IMG/VR virus record: IMGVR_UViG_3300023174_000039
Span: 62,001 to 126,000 of that record
Direction: 5' to 3' (one strand)
Length of the DNA: 64,000 nt
Shown: positions 7,398 through 63,219 of the stretch, in pieces
Layout: the number at the start of each line of letters is the position of its first letter
Numbering within the stretch: the stretch's first letter is position 1
Notes under the pieces: model-generated
The model's input: only the letters and a program-made list of their open reading frames with translations
Told to the model about the DNA's origin: nothing
The model's database searches: none
Translations under genes and position numbers: made by a program

Positions 7398-8503
7398 GTA
7401 AAGCACAATACAATTTAAAAACAAAAACAGATTACTTGAACCGCAAGATGTTTCTGGACCCTGCAGGTCCTGTGACTATTCAACGCTTTGAAGAAGTCAA
7501 ATATCAGAAACTAGCCAAATATGAGCAAGAGGCACGTGGATTCTTTTGGGTACCAGAAGAAATCTCTCTAACCAAAGACTCGCAAGACTTTAAAGATGCA
7601 TCAGATACTGTCAAGCATATCTTTACATCAAATCTGCTTCGACAAACAGCTTTGGACAGTTTGCAAGGACGTGGACCCACCCAGGTGTTCACTCCTGTAT
7701 GCTCAATTCCTGAACTAGAAAGTTTGATGTACAACTGGGGATTCTTTGAAACTAACATTCACAGCCGCAGTTATAGTCACATCATTCGCAATATCTACAA
7801 TGTGCCCAAGGATGTGTTTAACACTATCCATGACACACAAGAAATTGTTAGCATGGCGTCAAGCGTGGGCAAGTACTACGACGACCTACATCAATTTAAT
7901 TGTATCAAAGAAGTCGACAGCGATCCAAATAACAGCCCGGAAGAAGGCCACATCAAAGCAATTTATATGGCACTACATGCCTCCTACGCACTGGAAGCAT
8001 TCCGCTTTATGGTTAGTTTTGCCACTTCATTGGCCATGGTAGAAAACAAGATCTTCATTGGCAACGGCAATATCATTCAACTAATCTTGCAAGACGAACT
8101 GCTACACAAAGAGTGGACTGCATTTTTGATCAATCAAGTTGTGAAAGAAGATCCACGCTTTGCTGCCGCCAAAGCAGAATGCGAAGCAGAAGTATATCAA
8201 CTGTACTTGGATGTGATCCGTGAAGAAAAAGAGTGGGCCGACTACTTGTTTAAACATGGCCCTGTGATTGGACTCAACGCCAACATCTTGAGAGACTTTG
8301 TGGACTACACTGCCAAGAACGCACTCAACGAAATTGGTATCAAGTACCAGGAACCTGCACCCAAGAGCACGCCTATCCCTTGGTTTAACAAACACGTTGA
8401 CACCAGCAAGAAACAAACTGCACTGCAGGAGAACGAATCGACTAATTATGTTATCGGCATAATGAGCGACAGCATTGACTATGAGGAGTTACCAGACCTA
8501 TGA
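7394..8503 (+). CDS. nrdB: ribonucleotide reductase class Ia beta subunit
   Basis: FFWVPEEI, ETNIHSRSY, LEAFRF, DELLH, QENESTNY. Confidence 0.98.
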   Translation: MSKAQYNLKTKTDYLNRKMFLDPAGPVTIQRFEEVKYQKLAKYEQEARGFFWVPEEISLTKDSQDFKDASDTVKHIFTSNLLRQTALDSLQGRGPTQVFTPVCSIPELESLMYNWGFFETNIHSRSYSHIIRNIYNVPKDVFNTIHDTQEIVSMASSVGKYYDDLHQFNCIKEVDSDPNNSPEEGHIKAIYMALHASYALEAFRFMVSFATSLAMVENKIFIGNGNIIQLILQDELLHKEWTAFLINQVVKEDPRFAAAKAECEAEVYQLYLDVIREEKEWADYLFKHGPVIGLNANILRDFVDYTAKNALNEIGIKYQEPAPKSTPIPWFNKHVDTSKKQTALQENESTNYVIGIMSDSIDYEELPDL

Positions 8504-16643: not shown

Positions 16644-17168
16644 ATGACACAGAACAAAATACCCAGTGTAACATTTGCGTTTCGTGAGGGCGACGAAGAA
16701 CCCAAAGGCGGTGGCTGCCCAATTGGCGGAGCATTTGTTTTTAAAACAACCGATGAGTTGTTTGCCAAAAAGAAAGTGATACTGTTTAGCTTGCCCGGTG
16801 CATTCACACCCACTTGCTCAACATATCAGTTGCCCGGGTTTGAAAAACAATACAAGAACTTCCAGGCTCGCGGCATTGATGAGATCTACTGCATCAGCGT
16901 CAACGACGGGTTTGTTATGAATGAATGGGCACGTTCGCTAAAAATCAAGAATGTCAAGGTCATTCCTGATGGTGCTGGCTTGTTTACAGACGCCATGGGC
17001 ATGTTGGTTGACATGAGTGCCATTGGATTTGCCTGGCGCAGTCGCCGATATGCAGCCGTGATCAACGACGGTGTAATTGAGCACATGTTTTTAGAACCTG
17101 ATTCAAGCGAAACAGATCCTGATCCATATGGTGTTTCCAGTCCTGAAAATTTGATGAAGCACCTTTAA
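16644..17168 (+). CDS. peroxiredoxin (Prx5/redoxin family)
   Basis: LPGAFTPTCS, SVND.FVM..W, RSRRYA. Confidence 0.93.
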   Translation: MTQNKIPSVTFAFREGDEEPKGGGCPIGGAFVFKTTDELFAKKKVILFSLPGAFTPTCSTYQLPGFEKQYKNFQARGIDEIYCISVNDGFVMNEWARSLKIKNVKVIPDGAGLFTDAMGMLVDMSAIGFAWRSRRYAAVINDGVIEHMFLEPDSSETDPDPYGVSSPENLMKHL

Positions 17169-18337: not shown

Positions 18338-19027
18338 ATGTTTGAAACAACTTATGAAAATGGAATGTCATATCGTTCCGCAAGTGAGATTAATTCAGCA
18401 ATGGGCCGTGTATATGGACACATGAGCCTTGCTGTCGTTGTATCAATGATTGTCAGTTACTTTGTGGGCACTAGTCCAGAGTTGTTGGCATTCTTTTTTA
18501 CAGGATGGATGAAGTGGATTGTAATTTTTGCACCACTAGTGGCTATTTTTGGTGTTAGCATGGTACTAAGTAATAATCCTAGTAAAGGCGTAGCACAGTT
18601 ATGTTTACACGGCTTTGCGGCTTTGATGGGATTGAGCTTTGCCACAATTTTTGCTGTGTTTAACATGGGCAGTATTGTGTCGGCCTTTATGGGCGCGGCC
18701 ATCTTGTTTGGTGTCATGAGTGGCTATGGCTACTTTACCAAACAGAGTCTAGACAGTATGGGTAAGTTTATGATTGTGGGTTTGATTGCCATCTGCATTG
18801 CCAGTATCGTTAATATCTTTATTGGCAGCACCGTGATGCAGATGGTGATCTCCGCATTGGCCATCATCATCTTCTTAGGCTTAACAGCCTATGACACACA
18901 AAAGATTCGTGAAGAACTTTCGGTAGAGACTGGAGATGCCGTCGAAGTAACTGGGGCATTGACTCTGTACATGGACTTTATCAACTTGTTCCTAAATCTG
19001 TTACAGTTATTTGGTGATAGGAAGTAA
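18338..19027 (+). CDS. Bax inhibitor-1/YccA family membrane protein
   Basis: 7 TM segments; AYDTQKI, LYMDFINLFLNLL. Confidence 0.93.
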   Translation: MFETTYENGMSYRSASEINSAMGRVYGHMSLAVVVSMIVSYFVGTSPELLAFFFTGWMKWIVIFAPLVAIFGVSMVLSNNPSKGVAQLCLHGFAALMGLSFATIFAVFNMGSIVSAFMGAAILFGVMSGYGYFTKQSLDSMGKFMIVGLIAICIASIVNIFIGSTVMQMVISALAIIIFLGLTAYDTQKIREELSVETGDAVEVTGALTLYMDFINLFLNLLQLFGDRK

Positions 19028-22006: not shown

Positions 22007-23197
22007 ATGAAATCAACTGAAAATATCAGCACCTGCAGTTTTTGCAACAAACACAAAGATGCAGTAACCAAACTTATTGTAGGTGAAGAAGTTGCAATTT
22101 GCAACGAATGCGTGGACTTGTGCCAAACATTATTGGTAGATCAACCTGAGGCAAAATCCGAAGAAGCTAGTCTTGACCCTAGAGAGATTAAAAATCATCT
22201 TGACCAATATGTAATTGGGCAGGACAATGCCAAGGTCATGCTGAGTGTGGCCATTGCCAACCACTACAAACGCATTAGAAACAAAGATGTCAACACTGAA
22301 ATTGAAAAAGCCAACATTCTCATGCTTGGCCCCACAGGTTCGGGCAAAACATTGTTGGCTCGCACAGTGGCACGTTACCTAGATGTACCATTTGTGATTG
22401 CCGATGCTACTAGTCTAACCGAAGCAGGTTATGTGGGCGATGATGTGGAAAGTTTGATCAGTCGCTTGTATGCTGCCGCTGGGGGAGATGTTGAAAAAAC
22501 ACAACGCGGTATTGTGTTTGTAGACGAAATTGATAAAATCAGCCGCAAAAGCGAAAGCACCAGTATCACACGAGATGTATCCGGTGAAGGCGTACAGCAA
22601 GCCTTGTTAAAACTAGTAGAAGGCACCAAGTGTCGCATCGTGCCACAAGGTGGCCGCAAACATCCAGGCGGCGACAACATAGAAATTGACACACGCAACA
22701 TTTTGTTCATTGCCGGTGGCGCATTTGTTGGGCTAGACAACATTGTTAAAAGTCGTGTTCAAGGCACAGGCATTGGGTTTGGTGCAGAAGTAAACAGCAA
22801 AACAGCCGGAGATCTACACATTGACAAAACCACTCCTGACGATCTTGTGAGATTTGGACTTATTCCTGAGTTTGTGGGAAGGTTTCCTGCTTGGGTCGCA
22901 CTACGAGAACTAGACAAAAAAGATCTTGTGAGAATCCTTAAAGATGTCAAACATAACTATGTGAGTCAATATCAATGGTTGTTCAAACAGGACAATGTTG
23001 AACTTGAATTTACATCTGACAGCTTGGAGTTGATTGCAGAACGCACACTCAAAAACAAAACAGGCGCACGTGGATTACACAGTGAACTAGAGCGTGTGCT
23101 AATGCCACACATGTACAACCTAACACGCTATCGTACCAGCGGCATTAGCCATGTGGACATTGATCAGAATTTGGTAAATATTCCCAAGGAGCTTTAA
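22007..23197 (+). CDS. clpX: ATP-dependent Clp protease ATP-binding subunit ClpX
   Basis: C4 zinc finger, [23 protein letters not shown] loop, TGARGL. Confidence 0.97.
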
Positions 23198-23782: not shown

Positions 23783-24241
23783 ATGACAAAAACTCTCACC
23801 CTTCGTTCTTTCGATATTCCCGCAATTCACAAATTTGGTATCGGGTTCGATAACATGTTTGATGAACTCATGCGTGTGAGTGCCCAACAAGGCAGCACCA
23901 ACTACCCACCTTATGATATTGTACAAGTCAACGATGACGAATACATGATCAGTGTGGCTGTGGCTGGATTTGGGTACGATGATCTCTCAGTGACCAAGGA
24001 TAAAAAGATTTTAGTTATCGAAGGCACACACAGTCGTGAAACTGTGGAAAATGAAGATTCAACTGCAAAATACCTGCACAAAGGAATCAGTGAGCGTAGT
24101 TTCCGTAGAGAATTTCAATTGGCGGATCATGTGGAAATTACCGGAGCACACCTTGAACTTGGTATCCTAAGTGTTCACTTAAAACGTGAAATACCTGAAG
24201 AAGCCAAGCCAAAGACCATTGCTATCACATACACTTCCTAA
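23783..24241 (+). CDS. small heat shock protein Hsp20 (IbpA-like)
   Basis: IGFD..FD, NYPPYDI, AVAGF, YLHKGISERSF.R.F.LAD. Confidence 0.96.
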   Translation: MTKTLTLRSFDIPAIHKFGIGFDNMFDELMRVSAQQGSTNYPPYDIVQVNDDEYMISVAVAGFGYDDLSVTKDKKILVIEGTHSRETVENEDSTAKYLHKGISERSFRREFQLADHVEITGAHLELGILSVHLKREIPEEAKPKTIAITYTS

Positions 24242-30811: not shown

Positions 30812-31840
30812 ATGAACACACGAATTGGCTTTTGTTGCAAGTGGCTTAATGATCCGTACGAATGTGGCGGCATGAAAGTTAACGCAGTGGACCGTGACCT
30901 AAACGGCAGATCAACTACCATGAGATGGCTTCGCGAACATGCGTCCGAAGCCGACCAGCGTCAATGGGACATCATGAATCACAATGCGTCAGCGGCTGTG
31001 AGAATGATTGAACGTGTGGCCACACTACCGCCTGAACGTAGAATGGTACGACTTGGCTCAGAAATGCTACAAGGCTACACCGAACCCAACTGGATTGCTT
31101 GGTGGCAACGTCAGGAAATACAAGATCACTGTGCAAAGATCTTTGCTCCAATTGGTGAAGCCGCACGTAAATATGGTGTGCGTTTGAGCTTTCATCCTGG
31201 CCAGTTTTGTGTGCTAGCAAGCGAAGCAGATGAAATTGTAGAACGTAGCATACTGGAATTTGAATATCACGTGGATATGGCACGTTGGATGGGTTATGGT
31301 AGCACATGGCATGACAACGGGTTCAAGATCAACGTACACTTGAGCGGTAAAGGTGGACCCGCTAAATTCTTGCGTACCTTGGGTAGACTCAGTCCCGAAG
31401 CAAGAAACTTAATTACCATCGAGAATGATGAGATGACAAATGGACTTGACACTACTTTGGCTGTGGCTCAGCATGTGGCTCTTGTATTGGACCTACACCA
31501 CCACTGGATTAACTCGGGGGAATACATCTCCGCGCAGGACAGTCGTGTCCAGCGGGTTATTGACTCTTGGCGCGGCGCTCGTCCTGCACTTCATTACAGT
31601 GTTAGTCGCGAGGACCTTTTGGTTGACCATGACCGAGGAACTAGACCCGATCTTGCTGAACTTCTTGCTAGAGGTTATAAGAAACAGAAACTTCGAGCAC
31701 ACAGCGACTTCTATTGGAATGACGCTGTGACCGACTGGGCATTGACTTTTGCTGATGCATTTGATATTCAATGCGAAGCCAAAGGCAAAAACCTTGCCAG
31801 TGAACAAGTTTATGAACAATATATTTCTCAGCACTCTTGA
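30812..31840 (+). CDS. uvsE: UV damage endonuclease UvsE/UvdE
   Basis: IGFCCK, RLSFHPGQF, INVH, IENDE, DLHHH, HYS, AHSD, EAK.KN. Confidence 0.93.
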   Translation: MNTRIGFCCKWLNDPYECGGMKVNAVDRDLNGRSTTMRWLREHASEADQRQWDIMNHNASAAVRMIERVATLPPERRMVRLGSEMLQGYTEPNWIAWWQRQEIQDHCAKIFAPIGEAARKYGVRLSFHPGQFCVLASEADEIVERSILEFEYHVDMARWMGYGSTWHDNGFKINVHLSGKGGPAKFLRTLGRLSPEARNLITIENDEMTNGLDTTLAVAQHVALVLDLHHHWINSGEYISAQDSRVQRVIDSWRGARPALHYSVSREDLLVDHDRGTRPDLAELLARGYKKQKLRAHSDFYWNDAVTDWALTFADAFDIQCEAKGKNLASEQVYEQYISQHS

Positions 31841-39756: not shown

Positions 39757-40443
39757 TTATGCTGATTTTTTAATTACCGCTTGAACAAGGCTGTCTATGC
39801 TGTTCACAATGGGCACACCTTGTTCACTAGCAATACCGATGCTTAGGGGCAATTCAGTACAGCCCAGCACAATAGCTTGAGCTCCATGTGTGATCAGGCT
39901 GTGAATCACCTGCATCAGCAATACCTGAGATTCCCCAATCTTGCCAGCCTTGATAAAGTCAATTGCAGGTTGTACAAAAAAGTCCATTTCAGCACGGTCA
40001 GGAACAATACATTTCCATCCCTGTTGCTCTAGTTTGTGTTGATAGATACCGTTGTCTATTGTGCCTTGTGTGCCCATGATGCCAATGGTGGTGTTGGCAA
40101 GTCCTAGTTCACGCAGTTGATCTGCTATGCTGTCCACTATGTGAGTGATGGGCACACCCATTTTTGCCATGTCATCATACCAATAGTGTGCAGAGTTGCA
40201 AGGGATCACAACATGATCACAGCCCACAGTTTTCAGTGCCTGTATGCCCTGCAACAACCACAGCATGGGTTGATTGTCACCGGCTTGCATGGCTCGGCTA
40301 CGGTCAGGTATTCTTGGCTCGTTCCACAACACAAAAGGTATGTGTTCTTGATCGGTTGTGGCAGGCGTTTGTTTTATGAGTCTAGTCACAAACTCTGCTG
40401 ATGCCGCAGGACCCATGCCACCTAGTATGCCCAATCGTTTCAT
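39757..40443 (-). CDS. aspartate/glutamate racemase
   Basis: MKRLGILGGMGP, PDR, IPCNSAH, LGCTELP (two catalytic Cys). Confidence 0.93.
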   Translation of the reverse strand: MKRLGILGGMGPAASAEFVTRLIKQTPATTDQEHIPFVLWNEPRIPDRSRAMQAGDNQPMLWLLQGIQALKTVGCDHVVIPCNSAHYWYDDMAKMGVPITHIVDSIADQLRELGLANTTIGIMGTQGTIDNGIYQHKLEQQGWKCIVPDRAEMDFFVQPAIDFIKAGKIGESQVLLMQVIHSLITHGAQAIVLGCTELPLSIGIASEQGVPIVNSIDSLVQAVIKKSA

Positions 40444-41219
40444 ACTTTGCTGTGTTGCAACAACAACACAGTGTTGTTGTGTTGATTGGGATGAAAATCT
40501 CTGCGCATGAAGCTCAACCAAGGTCCGACCAACCCAGTCACAAATCCATTTTTCCAGTTGAACAACACAATCACAGCATCTTTTGCTGTGCGCCATTTCC
40601 ACAGTTGACGATCTGCACGTAGCAACACCAGGGTATTTCTGGCAATATCCCACACAAAGTTTGCAGTGGTCAACAGCATGCTGAGTCGCAGTTTACCGCC
40701 GCCAATGGCGTTGATAGTGTCCATGGCAACTGCTTTGTGTTCTATTTCTTCCACAGCATGCCAAGTCCACAACTGACGAAAGTGAGGATGCATGCTGTCC
40801 AACAGTTCAGGATGTGTCAACAAGTGTTCGGCAAAGATGGCAGTGATGTGCTCTAGACTCACTGTGCTGGCCAGTTGACCTTTTTTGCTGATTTTGGTTT
40901 TGATGTATTCTAGTTTGGCCAGTGCCAGTGCTTCCAAACGTTCAGCAGGCAAGCCTTGCTTGGTCAGCCAAAGATTGTATTGTTGGTGAGCATAACGATG
41001 CCAGTTTTCTTGTTTGACAAATGTGGCAATTGCTTGTTGTTGGTCAGCATCGGTGATTCTGTGTTGATAGTTTTTCACGCTGTCAATAAAGAAACGTTCA
41101 CCATGTGGGAATGTGATGCTCAAGGCATTTAAAAAATGTGTTTTGAACGCACTGTTATCAAAATAGTATTTTGGTAATTCCTGTGTCCAGTCTTGCTTTA
41201 GTGGTTGTTCTTTGAACAT
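40440..41219 (-). CDS. predicted metal-dependent hydrolase (PF10118-like, di-metal)
   Basis: NALS.TFP.GE.FFI, QE..H...H, LEH.TA, WHA.EE.EHK.VA, FHP. Confidence 0.85.
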   Translation of the reverse strand: MFKEQPLKQDWTQELPKYYFDNSAFKTHFLNALSITFPHGERFFIDSVKNYQHRITDADQQQAIATFVKQENWHRYAHQQYNLWLTKQGLPAERLEALALAKLEYIKTKISKKGQLASTVSLEHITAIFAEHLLTHPELLDSMHPHFRQLWTWHAVEEIEHKAVAMDTINAIGGGKLRLSMLLTTANFVWDIARNTLVLLRADRQLWKWRTAKDAVIVLFNWKNGFVTGLVGPWLSFMRRDFHPNQHNNTVLLLQHSKV

Positions 41220-41224
41220 ATTAG

Positions 41225-42133
41225 TTAGAAGGTAATTGATCCTGACCCCACAGTGGTCCACTTGTACACTCTATAGCCACCGGCAACTGTGACAGTTGGG
41301 CTACCAGTAGTGGCAGTTGCGGCTGCATATGAGTCTGGGTAACGAATGATCACGATACCTGATCCGCCACCTGCGCCAGACCCGTCGTTTCCCGGAGTCC
41401 CGCCGCCTGAGCCACCGCCGCCTCCACCAGTGTTTGGAGTTCCGGCAGTTGCAGTGGTTGCTCCTGTTGCTCCTGCACCACCGCCACCTGCACCACCAGA
41501 TCCAGCTGTACCACTGCCACCGCCACCAGCGTATCCACCGCCACCACCGCCACCTGCATAGGTTACAGATGTTCCAGATATTGAACTTGCTGTGCCTCCT
41601 CCACCATTTCCACCATTAGCTCCAGCATTGCCACCAACCGCACTGGCGCCGCCACCGCCACCAGCATGATAAGGAGGAGAAGTTGAACCTGATCCCCCGG
41701 AATTTCCTTGGCTTCCTGTCCCAGAACCACCCGATCCCGGCGCCGACACGCCGTACCCACCACCGCCACCAGATCCACCTGTTCCGCCGCCACTGGTACT
41801 ACTGGTATATGAATACGCACCGGCGCCACCACCAATAGATGTTATAGTGCTAAAAATAGAATCACCACCAGATGCACCTGCTTGTGTGCTTGAGTTTGGT
41901 GCGCCACCTGCGCCAACAGTGACCGTGATGGGTGTACCACTGGCTACTGCAAATCCTGTTGCGGTTCTAAATCCACCTGCACCCCCGCCCCCGCCATGTC
42001 GTGTACCACCTGCCCCGCCACCGCCAACCACAAGATATTCAACTGTGGGCGTAACTGACGGGCCACCACCTGTGGTATCGCCAATGGCCCATGCACCTGT
42101 AATTGCCCATCCGGGCCCGATTGTGAATCCCAT
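41225..42133 (-). CDS. glycine-rich domain virion/fibre protein
   Basis: VEYLVVGGGG, NTGGGGGG, GGSGIVIIRY; shares the N-terminal IGPGW motif. Confidence 0.75.
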   Translation of the reverse strand: MGFTIGPGWAITGAWAIGDTTGGGPSVTPTVEYLVVGGGGAGGTRHGGGGGAGGFRTATGFAVASGTPITVTVGAGGAPNSSTQAGASGGDSIFSTITSIGGGAGAYSYTSSTSGGGTGGSGGGGGYGVSAPGSGGSGTGSQGNSGGSGSTSPPYHAGGGGGASAVGGNAGANGGNGGGGTASSISGTSVTYAGGGGGGGYAGGGGSGTAGSGGAGGGGAGATGATTATAGTPNTGGGGGGSGGGTPGNDGSGAGGGSGIVIIRYPDSYAAATATTGSPTVTVAGGYRVYKWTTVGSGSITF

Positions 42134-42158
42134 GCTTGTGTCCTTATTAGACTCTTAT

Positions 42159-42761
42159 TTATTTTTTAAACAACAATGATGAAGCGATGACCAAGGCAGT
42201 CTGTGCAGCCTCTACGTCATCAGGCTGTTGTTTCCAACCCACGCTGATTTGTCCTATAAACACCCCGGGCTCGGCAGGCACACTGATACGGCACATGTAA
42301 TTCACACCGTTTTCTCTGTAGGCAAATCCAATTAGACTTTGTGGTTTGAGATAGGGACTGCACGGTATTTTACCAGACATGAGTCCAATCACATCATTGT
42401 TGTTGTCGTAGTTTTTGCTGAACAAGCCCACATCCAGGCCGTCGTACTGCTTGATTCTGCCACCATTGCGTGTGGACACAAACACAATTTTTCTTGTGTT
42501 TACCAGGGTATTGACCTCCATGATAGACACCAGTTCTACATCGGTGTTTTTCAACAAGAAATTGTAGGCTTCTTCATATCGGCCATTCATCTTGGGCAGG
42601 GCCTGTTGGGCACGATATGTGGCCATCATGGCATCTTTTTCGCTGTAAACAAACCAGCCCACAAAGCCCAGCACACACAGTAATATTACTGTGAATAATC
42701 TAAAAGGACTTTGCCCGATCCAGTTTAGTATTTCAAGCAGGGCTTCTTTGATCTTGTCCAT
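42159..42761 (-). CDS. single-TM protein with GAF-like periplasmic domain (T4 holin T-like?)
   Basis: N-terminal TM; C-terminal YMCRISVP....FIGQISVGW. Confidence 0.45.
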   Translation of the reverse strand: MDKIKEALLEILNWIGQSPFRLFTVILLCVLGFVGWFVYSEKDAMMATYRAQQALPKMNGRYEEAYNFLLKNTDVELVSIMEVNTLVNTRKIVFVSTRNGGRIKQYDGLDVGLFSKNYDNNNDVIGLMSGKIPCSPYLKPQSLIGFAYRENGVNYMCRISVPAEPGVFIGQISVGWKQQPDDVEAAQTALVIASSLLFKK

Positions 42762-44022
42762 GTGCCTGTTCTTTGTCACAAACAAATGCTGTCACTGCTA
42801 CGTTACCATGCACATGACTTGCTGTGCGAATCATGTCCATCAGAGGATCAACTGCAATCAACAGTACCAACACAGCTTCGCTGGGCAGTTTCAACAAGTC
42901 ACAAACAACTGCTACAGTGGCCACTGTGAGAATACCTGTTGTACCTGCTGATGCAAGCCCTGCCAAGATACTACCAAATAGCACAACTAGTAATCCTGTT
43001 AAGCCTAGTGGTGCATCATAAATGTTGGCAATGAATACTGTGGCAATGGCATAGTAAACGATACTACCAATGCGATTAACAGTGAAGCTGAGTGGCACAG
43101 TTAGTTCAACGCCGCCCTTGTCAAAGTGTAGTTTGTGCAGGGCTTCTTGTGCGTATGGGATACAGGCCAAACTTGAGCGTGAACTCACAGCAACAATCAG
43201 TGTTTCTTTGGTTTCTCGGATCACGGTAGCAAGGCTTAGACCTGAACGTGCCCAGATCACAGCAGTACCTGCCGCAACAACCAACACCCCCCCAACAAAC
43301 TGCTGGAACACAAAGTCAAACATGGTCATGAAGATGCCCACACCAACCTTGCCAACCTGCGATGAAATCATGGCCAACAGCGCAATTGGCAAGAAATAGT
43401 TTAGGAACTTGAAGATGCTGATACTGGCCTGTTGAATACTCTTTAGCACTTCCACCAACATCTTTTGACCTTCTGTTTTCAGGTGCCCCAGTGCCACACC
43501 AAAGATCAAACAAAAGATCACAATCTTTAAGCTCTCACCATTGTTTAGTGTGTTGAAGATGTTTTCAGGAATGAACTTTTCTGCCATCTTGCCTGCATTG
43601 ACAGGTGGTGCAACAGGCATGGGCTCGTGTAAAGTGATATTCAAATCAGTACCACTGTCTTTGTTGTTGACCAGCACACCCAGTTGTGTTTTCTTCTCTG
43701 GTGTCATTTCTGTACCTGTGACCAGCACAGTGCCCACACCAATCACAGCGGCCAGGAACATACTGCCCACAAAGCCAATGATGATTTTGCGTATCAATTC
43801 TTGACTGCCTTCTTTCTGCAGTAGGCCAATGATACCCACCAGGATAGTGGCCAACAAGAATGGTAACACAACAACTTTGAGCAGGCTGATGTAGATGCTG
43901 CCAATGCTGTCAAGACCTGTGCTGAACTCTGGAGCATACACACCAGCTAGAATGCCCACAATGATTGAACCAAGTATGGTCCAGGGGCTGATCAAAAATG
44001 TTTTTAAATGTGCAGTTGTCAT
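42733..44022 (-). CDS. dicarboxylate/amino acid:cation symporter (DAACS, GltP family)
   Basis: Multi-TM; IPENIF, SSRSS hairpin, D...DM.RT in TM8. Confidence 0.92.
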   Translation of the reverse strand: MTTAHLKTFLISPWTILGSIIVGILAGVYAPEFSTGLDSIGSIYISLLKVVVLPFLLATILVGIIGLLQKEGSQELIRKIIIGFVGSMFLAAVIGVGTVLVTGTEMTPEKKTQLGVLVNNKDSGTDLNITLHEPMPVAPPVNAGKMAEKFIPENIFNTLNNGESLKIVIFCLIFGVALGHLKTEGQKMLVEVLKSIQQASISIFKFLNYFLPIALLAMISSQVGKVGVGIFMTMFDFVFQQFVGGVLVVAAGTAVIWARSGLSLATVIRETKETLIVAVSSRSSLACIPYAQEALHKLHFDKGGVELTVPLSFTVNRIGSIVYYAIATVFIANIYDAPLGLTGLLVVLFGSILAGLASAGTTGILTVATVAVVCDLLKLPSEAVLVLLIAVDPLMDMIRTASHVHGNVAVTAFVCDKEQAHGQDQRSPA

Positions 44023-44031
44023 GGGGTGTCC

Positions 44032-44850
44032 TTATTTCTTTTCAGCTTTGTAGCGATCCATCAACTTCTTGGTGTCGATGTTGTTGTATTCATTTTTAAT
44101 CACGTAGTTGACCACGCTCAACAGTTGAATAGCCCGGGGATTCACTGCCACAGCAATGTTGTCTACACTGTCAGAGATGGTGATTGACTTGGTAGTAATT
44201 GCCGCATCTGGCTTTTCAAATGCAATTTTCTTGATTTCAAATTCATCACGGTAAGCGGCAGCGATGTCGCCACGTGTGACTTTGTCAATGATCACATCCC
44301 ACTTGTCTTCAGGCAGGAATTGTGCATTGGGAAAGTTAATTCTAGCAAATGTGTCATAACTGGAGTTGCGGATAAAACTTATCTTGCCGTTGAATTCTCT
44401 AATCACTTGATACACTTCTCTGCCCTGAGTATTCTGGCTCAACCATAGTCGATTCACAACTAAACTTTGGCGCAGTTTGATATAGGGATCACTGAATCTA
44501 ACTACTTGTAACCGTGGACCAGTTACGGATAGTTTACTAACAGCAATATCTGCTCTGCCATCTCTGACCTGTTCTACAACTTCTGCGAAGCTTTCTGCGT
44601 CTCGTCTAAACTGTACAGGAACTCCAAGTAACACCCCAATGCGTCGAGCGATCTCAACGTCAAGGCCGTGTATGGTATCCTCGTCTCCGGAAAAGAATGG
44701 AGGATTGTCTTTTTTGGTCATTGCCACCACAAGCACATTGGCTTTTTTGATTGCGGCAATATCTGCGGGTAGTGGTACAGTTGATGTTGGTAACTGTGCA
44801 GAAGCAACAGTGGCCAACACAAGTAATACGGTGGCGAATAGTTTTTTCAT
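44032..44850 (-). CDS. periplasmic amino-acid substrate-binding protein (SBP family 3)
   Basis: Signal peptide; NPPF, GLDVEIA, ADIAVS.LS.T..R...V.FSDPY. Confidence 0.92.
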   Translation of the reverse strand: MKKLFATVLLVLATVASAQLPTSTVPLPADIAAIKKANVLVVAMTKKDNPPFFSGDEDTIHGLDVEIARRIGVLLGVPVQFRRDAESFAEVVEQVRDGRADIAVSKLSVTGPRLQVVRFSDPYIKLRQSLVVNRLWLSQNTQGREVYQVIREFNGKISFIRNSSYDTFARINFPNAQFLPEDKWDVIIDKVTRGDIAAAYRDEFEIKKIAFEKPDAAITTKSITISDSVDNIAVAVNPRAIQLLSVVNYVIKNEYNNIDTKKLMDRYKAEKK

Positions 44851-44911: not shown

Positions 44912-44940
44912 AAAAAAAAGTCCCTTGCGGGACTCTTTTT
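44912..44940. terminator. bidirectional-type terminator hairpin
   Basis: A-tract, AGTCCC-TTGC-GGGACT, T-tract. Confidence 0.8.
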
Positions 44941-45208
44941 ATTTTGCCGCTGGCTTGGGTGCTTTTGGCTTGGGTTCTGCTTTGGGTTTTGCAGGTGCCC
45001 GGGGTTTTGGTGTTGCCTTGGGTTTTGCAGGTGCTTTGGGGACAGGAGCGGCAATTGTTGCCTCAGTCCCTGCTGGCACAACTTCAACCTTGGTTTCAAC
45101 CACGGGTGCTGATTCAACCTTGGTTTCAGGTGCTGGTGCTTCGACTTTGTATGGTGCTTCGGGAATTGAAGGCTTGCCAAACAAGAATTCTTTGATTTTT
45201 GCTAACAT
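44939..45208 (-). CDS. Pro/Ala/Lys-rich small protein
   Basis: SD AGGAG and TAAATA upstream; KAPAKPK repeats. Confidence 0.7.
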   Translation of the reverse strand: MLAKIKEFLFGKPSIPEAPYKVEAPAPETKVESAPVVETKVEVVPAGTEATIAAPVPKAPAKPKATPKPRAPAKPKAEPKPKAPKPAAK

Positions 45209-48036: not shown

Positions 48037-48081
48037 GTAATTATCTAAGCAGTTTATTGTTTAGATAATCATTTGTACATT

Positions 48082-48654
48082 ATGGCACTAGATACTACCA
48101 CAACCGAAAACTCTCACAGTCAAGACCTAGCCGATAACGGCATGTATGTTTTCATGGGCGAAGTAGACAATGAAAGCATCCGACCCATTATTGAATGGAT
48201 CTTGCACGAAAACTTTGTTGTAAAGAAAAAGCGCAAAGAACTCCTGCTGATGATCTGTAGTGAGGGTGGCGATATGAGTGCCGCCTTTGCCTTAATAGAT
48301 GTGATGAAGAGTTCCAACATCTTTATTAAAACCGTGGGCCTGGGGCAAATTGCATCAGCAGGCCTGTTGATCTTTCTAGCAGGATCACCGGGACGCAGAA
48401 CACTCACACCTAATACTTCAATCATGAGTCATCAATATGCCTGGGGCAGTGACGGAAAACATCATGAGTTGTTGGCTACCATTAGAGAATTTGAACTCAC
48501 GCAACGTCGCATGGTTCAGCATTACATAACCTGTACAGGATTGAGTGAAGAAGATATCAAGCAACACCTGTTGCCACCACATGATGTTTACTTGAGTGCC
48601 GAAGATGCCCTGAGACTAGGCATCTGTGATCATATCAGCCAGCTGGCTCGTTAA
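48082..48654 (+). CDS. ClpP-like protease (divergent)
   Basis: ICSEGG, GQIASAG (Ser), MSHQ (His), HDVYLSAE.A..LGICD. Confidence 0.88.
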   Translation: MALDTTTTENSHSQDLADNGMYVFMGEVDNESIRPIIEWILHENFVVKKKRKELLLMICSEGGDMSAAFALIDVMKSSNIFIKTVGLGQIASAGLLIFLAGSPGRRTLTPNTSIMSHQYAWGSDGKHHELLATIREFELTQRRMVQHYITCTGLSEEDIKQHLLPPHDVYLSAEDALRLGICDHISQLAR

Positions 48655-62222: not shown

Positions 62223-62410
62223 GTCCGTTTGACGCAATTGGATACAAGTTTCAATTGATACAGGCAGGCTTGGTCATGGATGATGATTTTTCTTGGTCGT
62301 ATGTTCCATCCACCTGGGACAACTTCACCGGCGAAACACACGGCAAATATGTGGTGTTTCAATTTCGTGAAGCTAATCTAGCAACTTTTTATCAATTAAA
62401 ATGGACATGA
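62195..62410 (+). CDS. hypothetical protein (same paralog family)
   Basis: FQFREANLATFYQLKWT. Confidence 0.65.
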   Translation: MHPITIRDVSPFDAIGYKFQLIQAGLVMDDDFSWSYVPSTWDNFTGETHGKYVVFQFREANLATFYQLKWT

Positions 62411-63219
62411 AATACTTTTTACTTGCACTTGCTCTTGTGGTGTCTCCAGCCTGGAGCAAGACCAAAACAGCTAACTTGCCCACAGAGTCCGTGTTGATAT
62501 TCAATGTGTCAACCAATAAATCTGAATATGAACGCAACGCCACAGAGCAACGTGCCATTGCGTCGATCACCAAGATCATGACTGCCATGGTTACCCTGGA
62601 TTATGATCGTGACCTGGGCAAACAACTCATGCACCGGCCAAGTGTGAGCACAAGTTTGCCCCGGCAACTGTACACACGACAAGACTTGCTCACTGCCATG
62701 TTGGTCAAAAGTGACAATGGGGCCGCAGAGACCCTGGCCCAAGACTATCCCGGGGGTGTGTCTGCTTTTGTGCAACGCATGAATCTACAGGCACGCGAAT
62801 GGGGCATGAGCCGAACTGAATTTGTAGATCCACATGGCCTTAGTTCTGGCAACATCAGCACAGCACATGATGTAGCTGACATGATTACTACCTCCACCGG
62901 CTACTGGTTCATTCGAGAAACCTCAATCAAGAAACAAGTGGCCATTGAAACTCAACAAAAGAAACGAGTGCGTACCATCAGTCTTGCCCATACCAGCGCA
63001 CCCATGTTGTTTGAGTTTGACAACATCATTGTGAGCAAAACTGGACTGACATCGGCAGCAGGTTGGTGCGTGGGCATGGCAGTGAATCAGCGCCAGCAAC
63101 AGTATGTTATTGTGGTGTTGGGCGCACCCAACAAGGCACATCGTTTTGAAGTGGTCAAAGACATGATGTACAACCATGTGCTGGATCAGAATATTCCCTA
63201 CTCCTTGGATTTGCAATAA
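62407..63219 (+). CDS. D-alanyl-D-alanine carboxy/endopeptidase (peptidase S11, PbpG-like)
   Basis: Signal peptide; SITK (SxxK), SDN, DPHGL, KTG. Confidence 0.92.
   Translation: MKYFLLALALVVSPAWSKTKTANLPTESVLIFNVSTNKSEYERNATEQRAIASITKIMTAMVTLDYDRDLGKQLMHRPSVSTSLPRQLYTRQDLLTAMLVKSDNGAAETLAQDYPGGVSAFVQRMNLQAREWGMSRTEFVDPHGLSSGNISTAHDVADMITTSTGYWFIRETSIKKQVAIETQQKKRVRTISLAHTSAPMLFEFDNIIVSKTGLTSAAGWCVGMAVNQRQQQYVIVVLGAPNKAHRFEVVKDMMYNHVLDQNIPYSLDLQ

Follow-up and report, generated by a model that had tools for sequence, protein, structure and literature searches.

A lake-water jumbo phage was found to carry a captured bacterial gene set, comprising a secreted amino-acid-binding protein (SBP), an unusual carrier of the glutamate transporter family (DAACS) and a racemase, which looks like a binding-protein-dependent secondary transporter of a kind that we could not find described in the papers we were able to search. 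The window analysed here, a stretch of 64,000 nt, is 100% identical to part of IMG/VR record UViG_3300023174_000039 (331,654 bp). A previous sequence-only reading had described one minus-strand run of six genes in this window, without any ABC permease or ATPase nearby, and this observation was confirmed. Its interpretation as an operon for binding-protein-assisted uptake of acidic amino acids, carried by a phage and including a racemase, was only partly supported. The features are as follows.

44032–44850, minus strand: secreted SBP_bac_3 binding protein, 272 aa, the first gene of the module.
42733–44022, minus strand: divergent DAACS/SDF carrier of a subfamily termed here R-type, 429 aa.
42159–42761, minus strand: single-pass membrane protein of 200 aa with a predicted C-terminal GAF-fold domain (TM200), T4-holin-T-like and conserved within the phage module.
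41225–42133, minus strand: Gly_rich_2 protein, 302 aa, a strain-specific insertion outside the conserved module.
40440–41261, minus strand: PF10118/COG3687 predicted metal-dependent hydrolase with a likely start at the ATG at 41219, a strain-specific insertion.
39757–40443, minus strand: PLP-independent amino acid racemase of the CuyB/aspartate racemase type, 228 aa.
44919–44934, no strand assigned: GC-rich hairpin followed by a T-run, which ends the upstream 89-aa ORF and marks the 5' boundary of the module.

Pfam profile searches matched five of the six genes to their families. The SBP (PF00497, 64 bits) has a Sec-type signal peptide ending ...ASA/QL and no lipobox Cys. The carrier (PF00375, 221.6 bits) begins 9 nt after the SBP stop, with an AAGGA-type ribosome-binding site, while the ATG of TM200, which gave no Pfam hit, lies 29 nt inside the end of the carrier gene. 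The Gly_rich_2 protein (PF21722, 60 bits) belongs to phrog_2295 of unknown function. The Metal_hydrol protein (PF10118, 249 bits), for which the di-metal character claimed previously is at most inferred, had no solved relative, and its Atlas clusters are all PF10118 and mostly from Pseudomonadota; its stop overlaps the racemase ATG as ATGA. For the racemase (PF01177, 139.6 bits), the true gene starts with MKRLG and is not the 298-aa ORF; both catalytic Cys (C82 and C195), as noted previously, are present and invariant in 29 relatives. No ORF of 100 aa or more in the window has Walker A together with an ABC signature, and the only other polytopic ORF with a family match is a Bax1-I protein. Neighbouring genes encode RNR, DNA ligase, tail-fibre-like, ClpX-like and ClpP-like proteins, whereas no capsid or terminase gene lies inside the window itself.

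Comparison with related jumbo-phage loci revealed that only four of the six genes form a conserved unit, in the order SBP_bac_3, DAACS, TM200 and racemase, which recurs in about 40 loci. The order SBP-DAACS-TM200 is invariant in all complete loci of 43 (39 from IMG/VR plus 4 metagenome loci), and the racemase is the fourth gene in most of them, while in one phage lineage (loci L001–L004) a D-amino-acid dehydrogenase (NF009074, 434 bits) takes its place. In contrast, the Gly_rich_2 and Metal_hydrol genes were absent from all the other phage loci retrieved and represent an insertion seen only in this phage, at a site where other phages carry PA14 or Laminin_G_3 genes. The run is not a six-gene functional operon. 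All four conserved genes are under purifying selection with dN/dS of 0.08–0.14 (0.08 for the SBP and 0.11 for TM200), and the arrangement is more than chance. The evidence for expression is weak, as it consists of short metatranscriptome contigs that could be contaminating DNA.

The pairing is not a phage innovation but a captured bacterial module. In about 50 bacterial genomes from several phyla the same divergent DAACS subfamily has this SBP directly upstream, usually with the same racemase next to it: 48 of 53 bacterial loci with this subfamily have the orthologous SBP adjacent or fused, and about 37 also have the racemase, whereas only 1 of 26 generic DAACS loci has an SBP. The hosts include Nodosilinea and Leptolyngbya cyanobacteria, Alpha-, Beta- and Gammaproteobacteria, Treponema, Chlorobium and Candidatus Wallbacteria. 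More distant metagenome relatives show SBP-DAACS-racemase (loci L044 and L051), while locus L049 has the DAACS-racemase pair and a weaker SBP match. Candidatus Wallbacteria encodes fusions, and the sequences P0347 (identical to locus L099) and P0361 read signal peptide, SBP (161–183 bits to the module SBP profile), an extra TM helix followed by basic residues, and then DAACS, a topology that puts the SBP in the periplasm. However, some relatives carry a C-terminal SBP-like domain with no intervening TM helix, which is presumably cytoplasmic, and not every SBP-DAACS fusion therefore implies periplasmic delivery. No ABC permease or ATPase family was among the 25 Pfam families most often matched by 78 neighbouring ORFs. 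The linkage and fusion of the two genes in other genomes, which had been set beforehand as a test, support the central idea that the ABC-type SBP works with the DAACS carrier rather than with an ABC permease. In addition, the DAACS, SBP and racemase trees each place the phages as one clade beside L044, L049, L051 and Pseudomonadota, and the phylum groupings agree across the three trees.

The carrier aligns over its full length to GltPh, GltTk and an aspartate transporter at about 100 bits. Its subfamily keeps the residues for binding acidic amino acids, with invariant equivalents of R276, D394, R397 and T398, but has lost the NMDGT motif and the acidic ligands of the Na1 and Na3 sites, and carries an invariant Arg where GltPh has Met311. 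In the phage protein NMDGT is replaced by NRIGS, N401 by H and D405 by N. A TM7 xRxGx motif occurs in 50 DAACS genes with an adjacent or fused SBP and in 12 without, while none of 19 NMDGT-type genes has an SBP. With the NMDGT motif and the Na1 and Na3 acidic ligands gone, the earlier designation as a symporter is doubtful. In the SBP, the amino-acid-binding positions T110, R113 and D202 as well as the extra basic residues K106, R118 and R201 are near-invariant in 62 phage and bacterial orthologues. The phage racemase scores as cysteate racemase CuyB (NCBIfam NF052483, 222.7 bits against a cut-off of 190; TIGR00035, 173 bits), and all linked racemases best match CuyB at 176–268 bits, so that cysteate is as likely a substrate as Asp. 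An acidic amino acid substrate with D/L interconversion, as proposed in the sequence-only reading, fits the retained binding residues, the racemase and the dehydrogenase that replaces it in L001–L004.

The 200-aa protein, previously described as TM/GAF-like, looks like a T4-type holin and is probably not a transporter subunit. Its AF2 model (pLDDT 81) shows one N-terminal TM helix and a C-terminal GAF fold, for which GAF domains gave Z 12.7 and the periplasmic domain of T4 holin T (6psk_T) gave Z 12.5 with an rmsd of 3.1 over 133 aa. Alignment with hhalign to Edwardsiella phage GF-2 gp77, a remote homologue in a holin slot, gave a probability of 87%, and alignment to a ctah5458 protein gave 99%. 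An Atlas cluster holds PF11031.

Based on these results, we consider with moderate confidence that the conserved core is a bacterial three-gene module captured, most likely from Pseudomonadota, by an ancestor of this clade of about 330–350 kb freshwater jumbo phages. In this view, the infected cell would secrete the SBP into the periplasm, where it would bind an aspartate-like acidic alpha-amino acid (aspartate or cysteate, D-forms included) and hand it to the DAACS-family elevator carrier instead of an ABC permease. In the cytoplasm, a CuyB/RacD-type racemase, or a DadA-type D-amino-acid dehydrogenase in one phage lineage, would act on the imported compound, the racemase interconverting the D and L forms so that host metabolism can use it as a nitrogen, carbon or sulfur source. 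Given the loss of the canonical sodium-site residues, energy coupling is probably not the classical 3 Na+ symport, and the protein might not be a concentrative importer at all. The T-holin-like gene wedged between carrier and racemase and the Gly-rich and hydrolase genes would be later insertions that are not needed for transport, although a holin-like gene translationally overlapped with the carrier gene in every phage is not explained by a pure nutrient-uptake model. While gene identities, linkage, fusions, residue patterns and purifying selection were established directly from the sequences, the ligand and its binding, transport and its direction, dependence on the SBP, racemase activity and the benefit to the phage are inferred.

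As an alternative, which we regard as unlikely, the SBP and the R-type DAACS protein could form a ligand-sensing pair (a co-sensor or transceptor), as DctB and DctA do with the kinase DctS in Bacillus subtilis, with the signal going to a neighbouring dCache-HAMP cyclase or kinase in bacteria, or to TM200 to set lysis timing in the phage. Indeed, dCache_1 is the commonest family among the 78 bacterial neighbours (17), followed by HAMP (9), HisKA (4) and Guanylate_cyc (3), and fusions of DAACS-TM-dCache-TM-cyclase exist (P0281, P0334 and P0343), some relatives being fused to dCache-guanylate cyclase, which fits a sensing role as well as an uptake role. The loss of the Na+ sites is compatible with a non-concentrating protein, and TM200 has a GAF-fold domain, probably periplasmic, and overlaps the carrier gene. 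However, a cytoplasmic racemase or dehydrogenase makes sense only if the ligand enters the cell, the substrate-site residues are invariant, the phages carry no kinase or cyclase next to the module, and no TM200 homologue occurs in the bacterial modules. Sensing and transport are not mutually exclusive.

It is also doubtful that TM200 is a true third subunit of a tripartite phage transporter, comparable to the small membrane subunits of TRAP and TTT systems. Its invariable adjacency to the DAACS gene with an overlapping start in about 40 loci, its purifying selection and the one extra TM helix in the natural SBP-DAACS fusions would fit such a role, but the phages compared are close relatives, so that conserved synteny among them is weak evidence. 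Moreover, bacterial modules work without it, its fold and architecture match T4 holin T, and homologues occur in phages that lack the transporter, one located between the Q antiterminator and the endolysin and spanin genes in GF-2 and another two genes from a lysozyme gene.

Export or wall editing, in which the racemase makes a D-amino acid that the carrier releases to the periplasm to alter the peptidoglycan, appears very unlikely. The loss of the Na+-coupling residues would suit a facilitator or exporter, the window also encodes a D-Ala-D-Ala carboxypeptidase (62401–63219), and a holin-like gene lies inside the module. In contrast, a dedicated periplasmic binding protein, tethered to the carrier in the fusions, has no obvious role in export, and both the catabolic dehydrogenase in L001–L004 and the D-specific dehydratase-like genes beside the alphaproteobacterial modules indicate consumption of D-amino acids, not their production. 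Least likely is that the phage SBP plugs into a host ABC importer, as the cyanophage PstS is thought to do, and lies next to the DAACS gene incidentally. In its favour, SBP_bac_3 proteins normally serve polar-amino-acid ABC systems, the best PDB matches are ABC binding proteins, and our search for ABC components left out the other 267 kb of the phage genome and the host genome. Against it, the same SBP family is adjacent to the R-type DAACS across phyla and fused to it in Candidatus Wallbacteria, no ABC family is among the 25 most frequent neighbour families, and the SBP and DAACS trees agree.

Among known systems, TAXI-GltS of Bordetella pertussis (BP0403 with GltS), alongside TRAP and TTT transporters, likewise couples the gene of a periplasmic binding protein tightly to that of a secondary elevator-type carrier of an acidic amino acid, with natural SBP-carrier fusions in other bacteria and no ATPase (PMC12344293). 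It was inferred from the same kind of evidence, and the authors predict more SBP-dependent elevator carriers. Here, however, the SBP is an ABC-type family 3 protein (PF00497) and not DctP, TAXI or TctC, the carrier is DAACS (PF00375) and not DctQM, TctAB or GltS and lacks the usual Na+ ligands, a racemase is part of the module, and the module is carried by a phage. In the D-aspartate utilisation genes racD-aspT/aspY of Acinetobacter baylyi ADP1, and in racD with VF_1546 of Aliivibrio fischeri, a DAACS-family carrier gene lies next to a PLP-independent aspartate-type racemase gene, and the imported D-amino acid is racemised for catabolism (PMC13631041), but no binding protein is reported and the LysR regulator DarR is absent here. 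In the cysteate cluster of Bilophila wadsworthia, an SDF transporter lies next to the racemase CuyB and the D-cysteate sulfo-lyase CuyA (PMC11193023), without a reported SBP; no CuyA turned up among the roughly 50 window ORFs covered by our non-exhaustive scan, and as CuyB was not tested on aspartate, the family assignment does not settle the substrate.

The DctB-DctA-DctS C4-dicarboxylate sensor of Bacillus subtilis also associates an extracytoplasmic binding protein with a DAACS carrier and a membrane sensor, with DctB described as an accessory co-receptor (PMC6978683, citing Graf et al. 2014), and bacterial relatives of the present module sit beside dCache-HAMP sensors. DctB is not known to be needed for transport, the substrates are dicarboxylates, no racemase is involved, and the phage has no kinase. 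Cyanophage PstS is a phage-encoded periplasmic binding protein used to boost nutrient uptake during infection, but relies on the host ABC permease, whereas here the phage brings its own non-ABC carrier and a downstream enzyme. For TM200 only, the closest match is T4 holin T (class III holin, PF11031), with which it shares a length of about 200 aa, a short N-terminus, one TM helix and a predicted C-terminal GAF-like domain that superposes on T residues 78–217. There is no detectable sequence similarity (hhalign probability 1.3%), the gene is not next to an endolysin gene here, and a lysis function is inferred only; TM200 has two invariant Cys.

Inspection of the minus-strand run revealed six ORFs between 39757 and 44886, for which a Pfam search matched five to known families, while the 200-aa protein (hereafter TM200) returned no family. 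Gene boundaries required small corrections, and the resulting features are as follows.

44939–45208 (minus): 89-aa Pro/Ala/Lys-rich low-complexity ORF, which ends in the following hairpin immediately upstream of the SBP gene
44919–44934: strong hairpin with a T-run that closes this upstream gene
starting at the ATG at 44850 (minus): SBP_bac_3 binding protein (PF00497, 64 bits) with a Sec signal peptide seen in the translation
starting 9 nt after the SBP stop (minus): SDF/DAACS carrier (PF00375, TCDB 2.A.23; 221.6 bits, covering residues 14–414)
ATG 29 nt inside the 3' end of the DAACS gene (minus): TM200
40440–42133 (minus): Gly_rich_2 (60 bits) and Metal_hydrol PF10118 (249 bits)
39757–40443 (minus): Asp_Glu_race racemase (PF01177, 139.6 bits), 228 aa, with its ATG overlapping the hydrolase stop as ATGA

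The observation made in the sequence-only reading, namely this gene run in a window without an ABC permease or ATPase, was confirmed. No ORF in the window combines a Walker A motif with an ABC signature, and the only other multi-TM ORF with a family match, at 18338–19027 (plus), encodes a Bax1-I/YccA-family membrane protein with six TM helices (PF01027, 182.8 bits). The window is 100% identical to a 331,654-bp IMG/VR contig from lake water, and the module is accompanied by RNR, ATP-dependent ligase, tail-fibre-like, ClpX-like, ClpP-like, UvdE and radical SAM genes. A jumbo phage is the sensible reading, although no capsid or terminase gene lies in the window. DNA searches of GenBank phages found no close relative, and the protein hits to the DAACS obtained there are bacterial contigs filed as phage.

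The DAACS protein has more than 120 metagenomic relatives at 77–93% identity, of which we examined 39 IMG/VR loci, several on contigs of 260–350 kb, and four metagenome contigs. Every complete locus shows the order SBP, DAACS, TM200, followed in most loci by the racemase, whereas in L001–L004, four of the phage loci, this slot is taken by a 391-aa DadA-type D-amino-acid dehydrogenase (NF009074, 434 bits, below the cut-off of 494). In contrast, Gly_rich_2 and Metal_hydrol occur only in the window's own contig. The gap between TM200 and the racemase is an insertion hot spot, holding a PA14 protein in phage locus L038 (6721–8856), a Laminin_G_3 protein in L025 (6492–7241), and Gly_rich_2 plus Metal_hydrol in the window. 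The six-gene run is therefore a four-gene conserved unit with a variable insertion. For Metal_hydrol, neither a solved relative nor an informative neighbour was found. Within the phage clade, dN/dS amounts to 0.08 for the SBP, 0.08 for the DAACS, 0.11 for TM200 and 0.14 for the racemase, although these values are approximate as dS is near saturation. In several relatives (L010, L011, L012, L019, L023, L029 and L037; DAACS ORFs starting at 8001), the DAACS reading frame runs on to 460–487 aa and overlaps the holin-like TM200 gene by roughly 120–200 nt.

To assess transcription of the module, we first considered T4 late promoters. TATAAATA-like strings sit upstream of the SBP gene in some relatives, but the motif is not enriched in the window (1 match against 1.7 expected), and GGTATTAAATAC is not a repeated element either, so that the idea was dropped. 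A sigma-70 and terminator scan gave counts in the module no higher than in shuffled sequence, apart from the hairpin at 44919–44934. In metatranscriptomes, only short contigs of 151–291 nt hit the SBP, DAACS and TM200 genes; none of them spans a gene junction and DNA carry-over cannot be excluded, hence they provide no operon evidence.

The pairing is bacterial and old. An exhaustive profile search revealed a large DAACS subfamily at 30–43% identity and 170–340 bits, while canonical carriers score only about 100 bits. Among its nearest members, the metagenomic loci L044 and L051 read SBP-DAACS-racemase and SBP-DAACS-racemase-DAACS, while L049 has the DAACS-racemase pair with a weaker upstream SBP match. 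A scan of one genome per species, based on an alignment of five sequences, returned 80 loci, which were searched with profiles built from the phage genes. Of 53 loci with a subfamily DAACS, 48 have the orthologous SBP directly adjacent or fused, and about 37 also have the racemase, in the order racemase-SBP-DAACS in filamentous cyanobacteria and SBP-DAACS-racemase in Proteobacteria. In contrast, only 1 of 26 loci with a generic DAACS has such an SBP, and none has the racemase. Among 78 flanking ORFs of the bacterial loci, no ABC permease or ATPase family was found in the 25 most frequent families; the commonest were dCache_1 (17), HAMP (9) and HisKA (4). One alphaproteobacterial locus reads SBP, DAACS, racemase, dCache-HAMP-guanylate cyclase, and a D-serine-dehydratase-like PLP enzyme; the dCache-HAMP-cyclase gene beside the alphaproteobacterial module (L062, 7024–9252) is a separate gene, not a fusion.

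The DAACS, SBP and racemase trees each recover the phages as one clade. In the DAACS tree, L044 is its sister, with L049 and a Pseudomonadota genome next, while in the SBP and racemase trees L044, L049, L051 or alphaproteobacterial rows are the nearest by path. The same phylum groupings appear in all three trees, which fits a single capture of the module as a block. A 2,980-bp contig (L052, JAPLOJ010000301.1) that is 90% identical to the phage DAACS and holin-like genes, with the DAACS gene in two pieces, is binned in an Alphaproteobacteria MAG from Lac Pavin, which could be misbinning or a hint about the host.

Natural fusions were also detected. The DAACS relatives P0347, identical to an ORF of Candidatus Wallbacteria (locus L099, which has two tandem copies), and P0361 read signal peptide, SBP, one extra hydrophobic helix followed by Arg-rich residues, then DAACS, with SBP domains scoring 161–183 bits against the module SBP profile. 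This topology places the SBP in the periplasm, tethered to the carrier. Other relatives (P0305, P0311, P0328 and P0284) carry a C-terminal, more divergent SBP_bac_3-like domain without a linking TM helix; as this domain is presumably cytoplasmic, we do not count these fusions as support for periplasmic delivery. Further relatives (P0281, P0334 and P0343) are DAACS fusions to TM-dCache-TM-guanylate/adenylate cyclase.

The carrier itself is unusual. It matches an aspartate transporter, GltTk and GltPh in phmmer searches at E values of 1e-22 to 3e-28 over residues 14–419, and R282, D396, R399 and T400 of the phage protein align to the HP1 Arg (R276) and the TM8 residues D394, R397 and T398 of GltPh that hold an acidic amino acid, all four being invariant in a 16-sequence subfamily alignment. 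However, the NMDGT motif reads NRIGS, and the sodium-site positions depart from the canonical pattern, as Met311 (at Na2) is Arg, Asp312 is Ile, Asn401 is His and Asp405 is Asn. The Arg is invariant in the subfamily alignment, while two SBP-linked members have Lys in its place. By fold and substrate site the protein is a member of the DAACS family, but not a canonical Na+-coupled one. Among all DAACS genes in the fetched bacterial loci, the xRxGx type has an adjacent or fused SBP in 50 cases and none in 12, several of the 12 being second copies or lying at contig ends, whereas the NMDGT type has an SBP in 0 of 19. Association with an SBP and loss of the sodium ligands therefore go together.

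With regard to the substrate, alignment of the SBP to 4i62 and 4h5f places R113 and D202 at the ligand positions, and T110, R113 and D202, the positions that hold the alpha-carboxylate and alpha-amino groups in solved family 3 proteins, are present in 60 of 62 orthologues. The SBP also has several extra near-invariant basic residues. The phage racemase carries the two catalytic cysteines C82 and C195, which are invariant, and passes the curated cut-offs of the NCBIfam cysteate racemase CuyB model NF052483 (222.7 bits against 190) and of TIGR00035 (173 bits against 93). Most of its bacterial counterparts also pass the CuyB cut-off; all nine relatives tested best match that model, at 176–268 bits, with the two cyanobacterial ones and one gammaproteobacterial one at or just below it. 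CuyB was found next to an SDF transporter in Bilophila wadsworthia, for which import of L-cysteate was proposed, although BwCuyB was assayed on cysteate, Cys and Ser only (PMC11193023). In Acinetobacter baylyi, DAACS carriers with the racemase RacD are proven D-aspartate utilisation genes (PMC13631041). The D-amino-acid dehydrogenase variant and the neighbouring D-specific dehydratase-like genes point to a D-amino acid being handled, and we consider cysteate and aspartate about equally likely. A second gene related to the cell wall or to D-amino acids, a Peptidase_S11 D-alanyl-D-alanine carboxypeptidase (62401–63219, plus; 135.6 bits), lies about 18 kb from the module.

The AF2 model of TM200 (pLDDT 81) predicts a long N-terminal TM helix plus a GAF fold. 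The periplasmic domain of T4 holin T (6psk_T) superposes with Z 12.5 and an rmsd of 3.1 over 133 aa, covering T residues 78–217, over the same part of a protein of the same size and architecture; ordinary GAF domains score equally well (Z 12.7), so the fold alone does not discriminate. Sequence homology to T4 holin T was rejected, as there is no Pfam hit and hhalign to T gives a probability of only 1.3%. The nearest ESM Atlas clusters are all viral, and the only indirect link to the family is a look-alike cluster in which 12% of members carry PF11031 (Phage_holin_T). TM200 is not next to an endolysin gene in the window. Its family profile matches gp77 of Edwardsiella phage GF-2 (probability 87%, both Cys aligned), a remote homologue whose gene lies between the Q antiterminator and the endolysin and Rz spanin genes, and a closer homologue two genes from a lysozyme gene in a 34-kb phage (probability 99%). 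An origin as a Cache-type sensor remnant of the bacterial module was likewise rejected, since no TM200 homologue was found in the bacterial loci and the fold search gives GAF, not PDC/Cache. Supported only by fold, architecture and the synteny of remote homologues, we concluded that TM200 is a T-type-holin-like protein inserted into the module, its persistent overlap with the carrier gene being as yet unexplained.

Literature searches for an SBP-dependent DAACS system found nothing. According to the 2025 TAXI-GltS study (PMC12344293), only TRAP and TTT carriers were previously known to use a soluble binding protein, and that study predicts further elevator-type cases and asks whether SBP dependence is a general property of elevator-type carriers. 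DAACS is the textbook elevator family. The closest functional precedent for an SBP working with a DAACS carrier is the DctB-DctA-DctS sensor of Bacillus subtilis. The linkage across taxa and the fusions described here are of the kind seen for TRAP, TTT and TAXI-GltS, but the components are PF00497 and PF00375 instead of a DctP, TAXI or TctC binding protein with a DctQM, TctAB or GltS membrane part, so that the phage-borne system would work like these transporters while belonging to none of them. A widespread DAACS subfamily genetically tied to, and sometimes fused with, an ABC-type family 3 binding protein would represent a further class of SBP-dependent secondary transporter and would let the above idea be tested directly, in a subfamily that has also swapped its sodium-site residues for an Arg. 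For phage biology, this would be a jumbo phage that brings a complete high-affinity uptake system plus a D/L-converting enzyme for aspartate-like acids or sulfonates in nutrient-poor lake water, which goes beyond the single-component nutrient genes known from cyanophages.

The interpretation offered in the sequence-only reading was partly supported. It is probably right at its core, in that the SBP would partner the DAACS carrier, the substrate would be an acidic amino acid and chirality would be handled, but wrong on the extent of the operon and on counting the TM/GAF-like protein with the uptake genes, while the pairing originated in bacteria, not in phages, and sodium symport is doubtful. 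Gene identities, arrangement, fusions and residue patterns were read directly from sequence, whereas all functional steps, including ligand binding, transport and its dependence on the SBP, racemisation of cysteate and any lysis activity of TM200, are inferred. A more far-reaching possibility, which we regard as very unlikely although it is not excluded, is that the R-type DAACS (the subfamily carrying this Arg) and its SBP form a carrier that is not sodium-coupled, is gated by the binding protein and doubles as a sensor. In these jumbo phages it would be wired to the overlapping T-holin-like protein, whose GAF-fold domain is presumably periplasmic, so that an extracellular D-amino acid or cysteate, for example released from neighbouring lysed cells or from phytoplankton, would tune lysis timing as a small-molecule analogue of T4 lysis inhibition.

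Beyond the module, the window holds a set of chaperone, protease and stress genes (22007–23197, 23783–24241, 48073–48654, 16644–17168 and 30812–31840), comprising ClpX-like, a probable HSP20 assigned only by synteny with a related contig, ClpP-like, peroxiredoxin and UvdE, and related contigs also carry ClpB, DnaJ, Cpn10 and ClpS. In a 91%-identical relative, the contig of P0016, the module and the four genes beside it lie in the opposite orientation and at a different position relative to the ClpX and UDP-glucose dehydrogenase genes, which indicates a large rearrangement.
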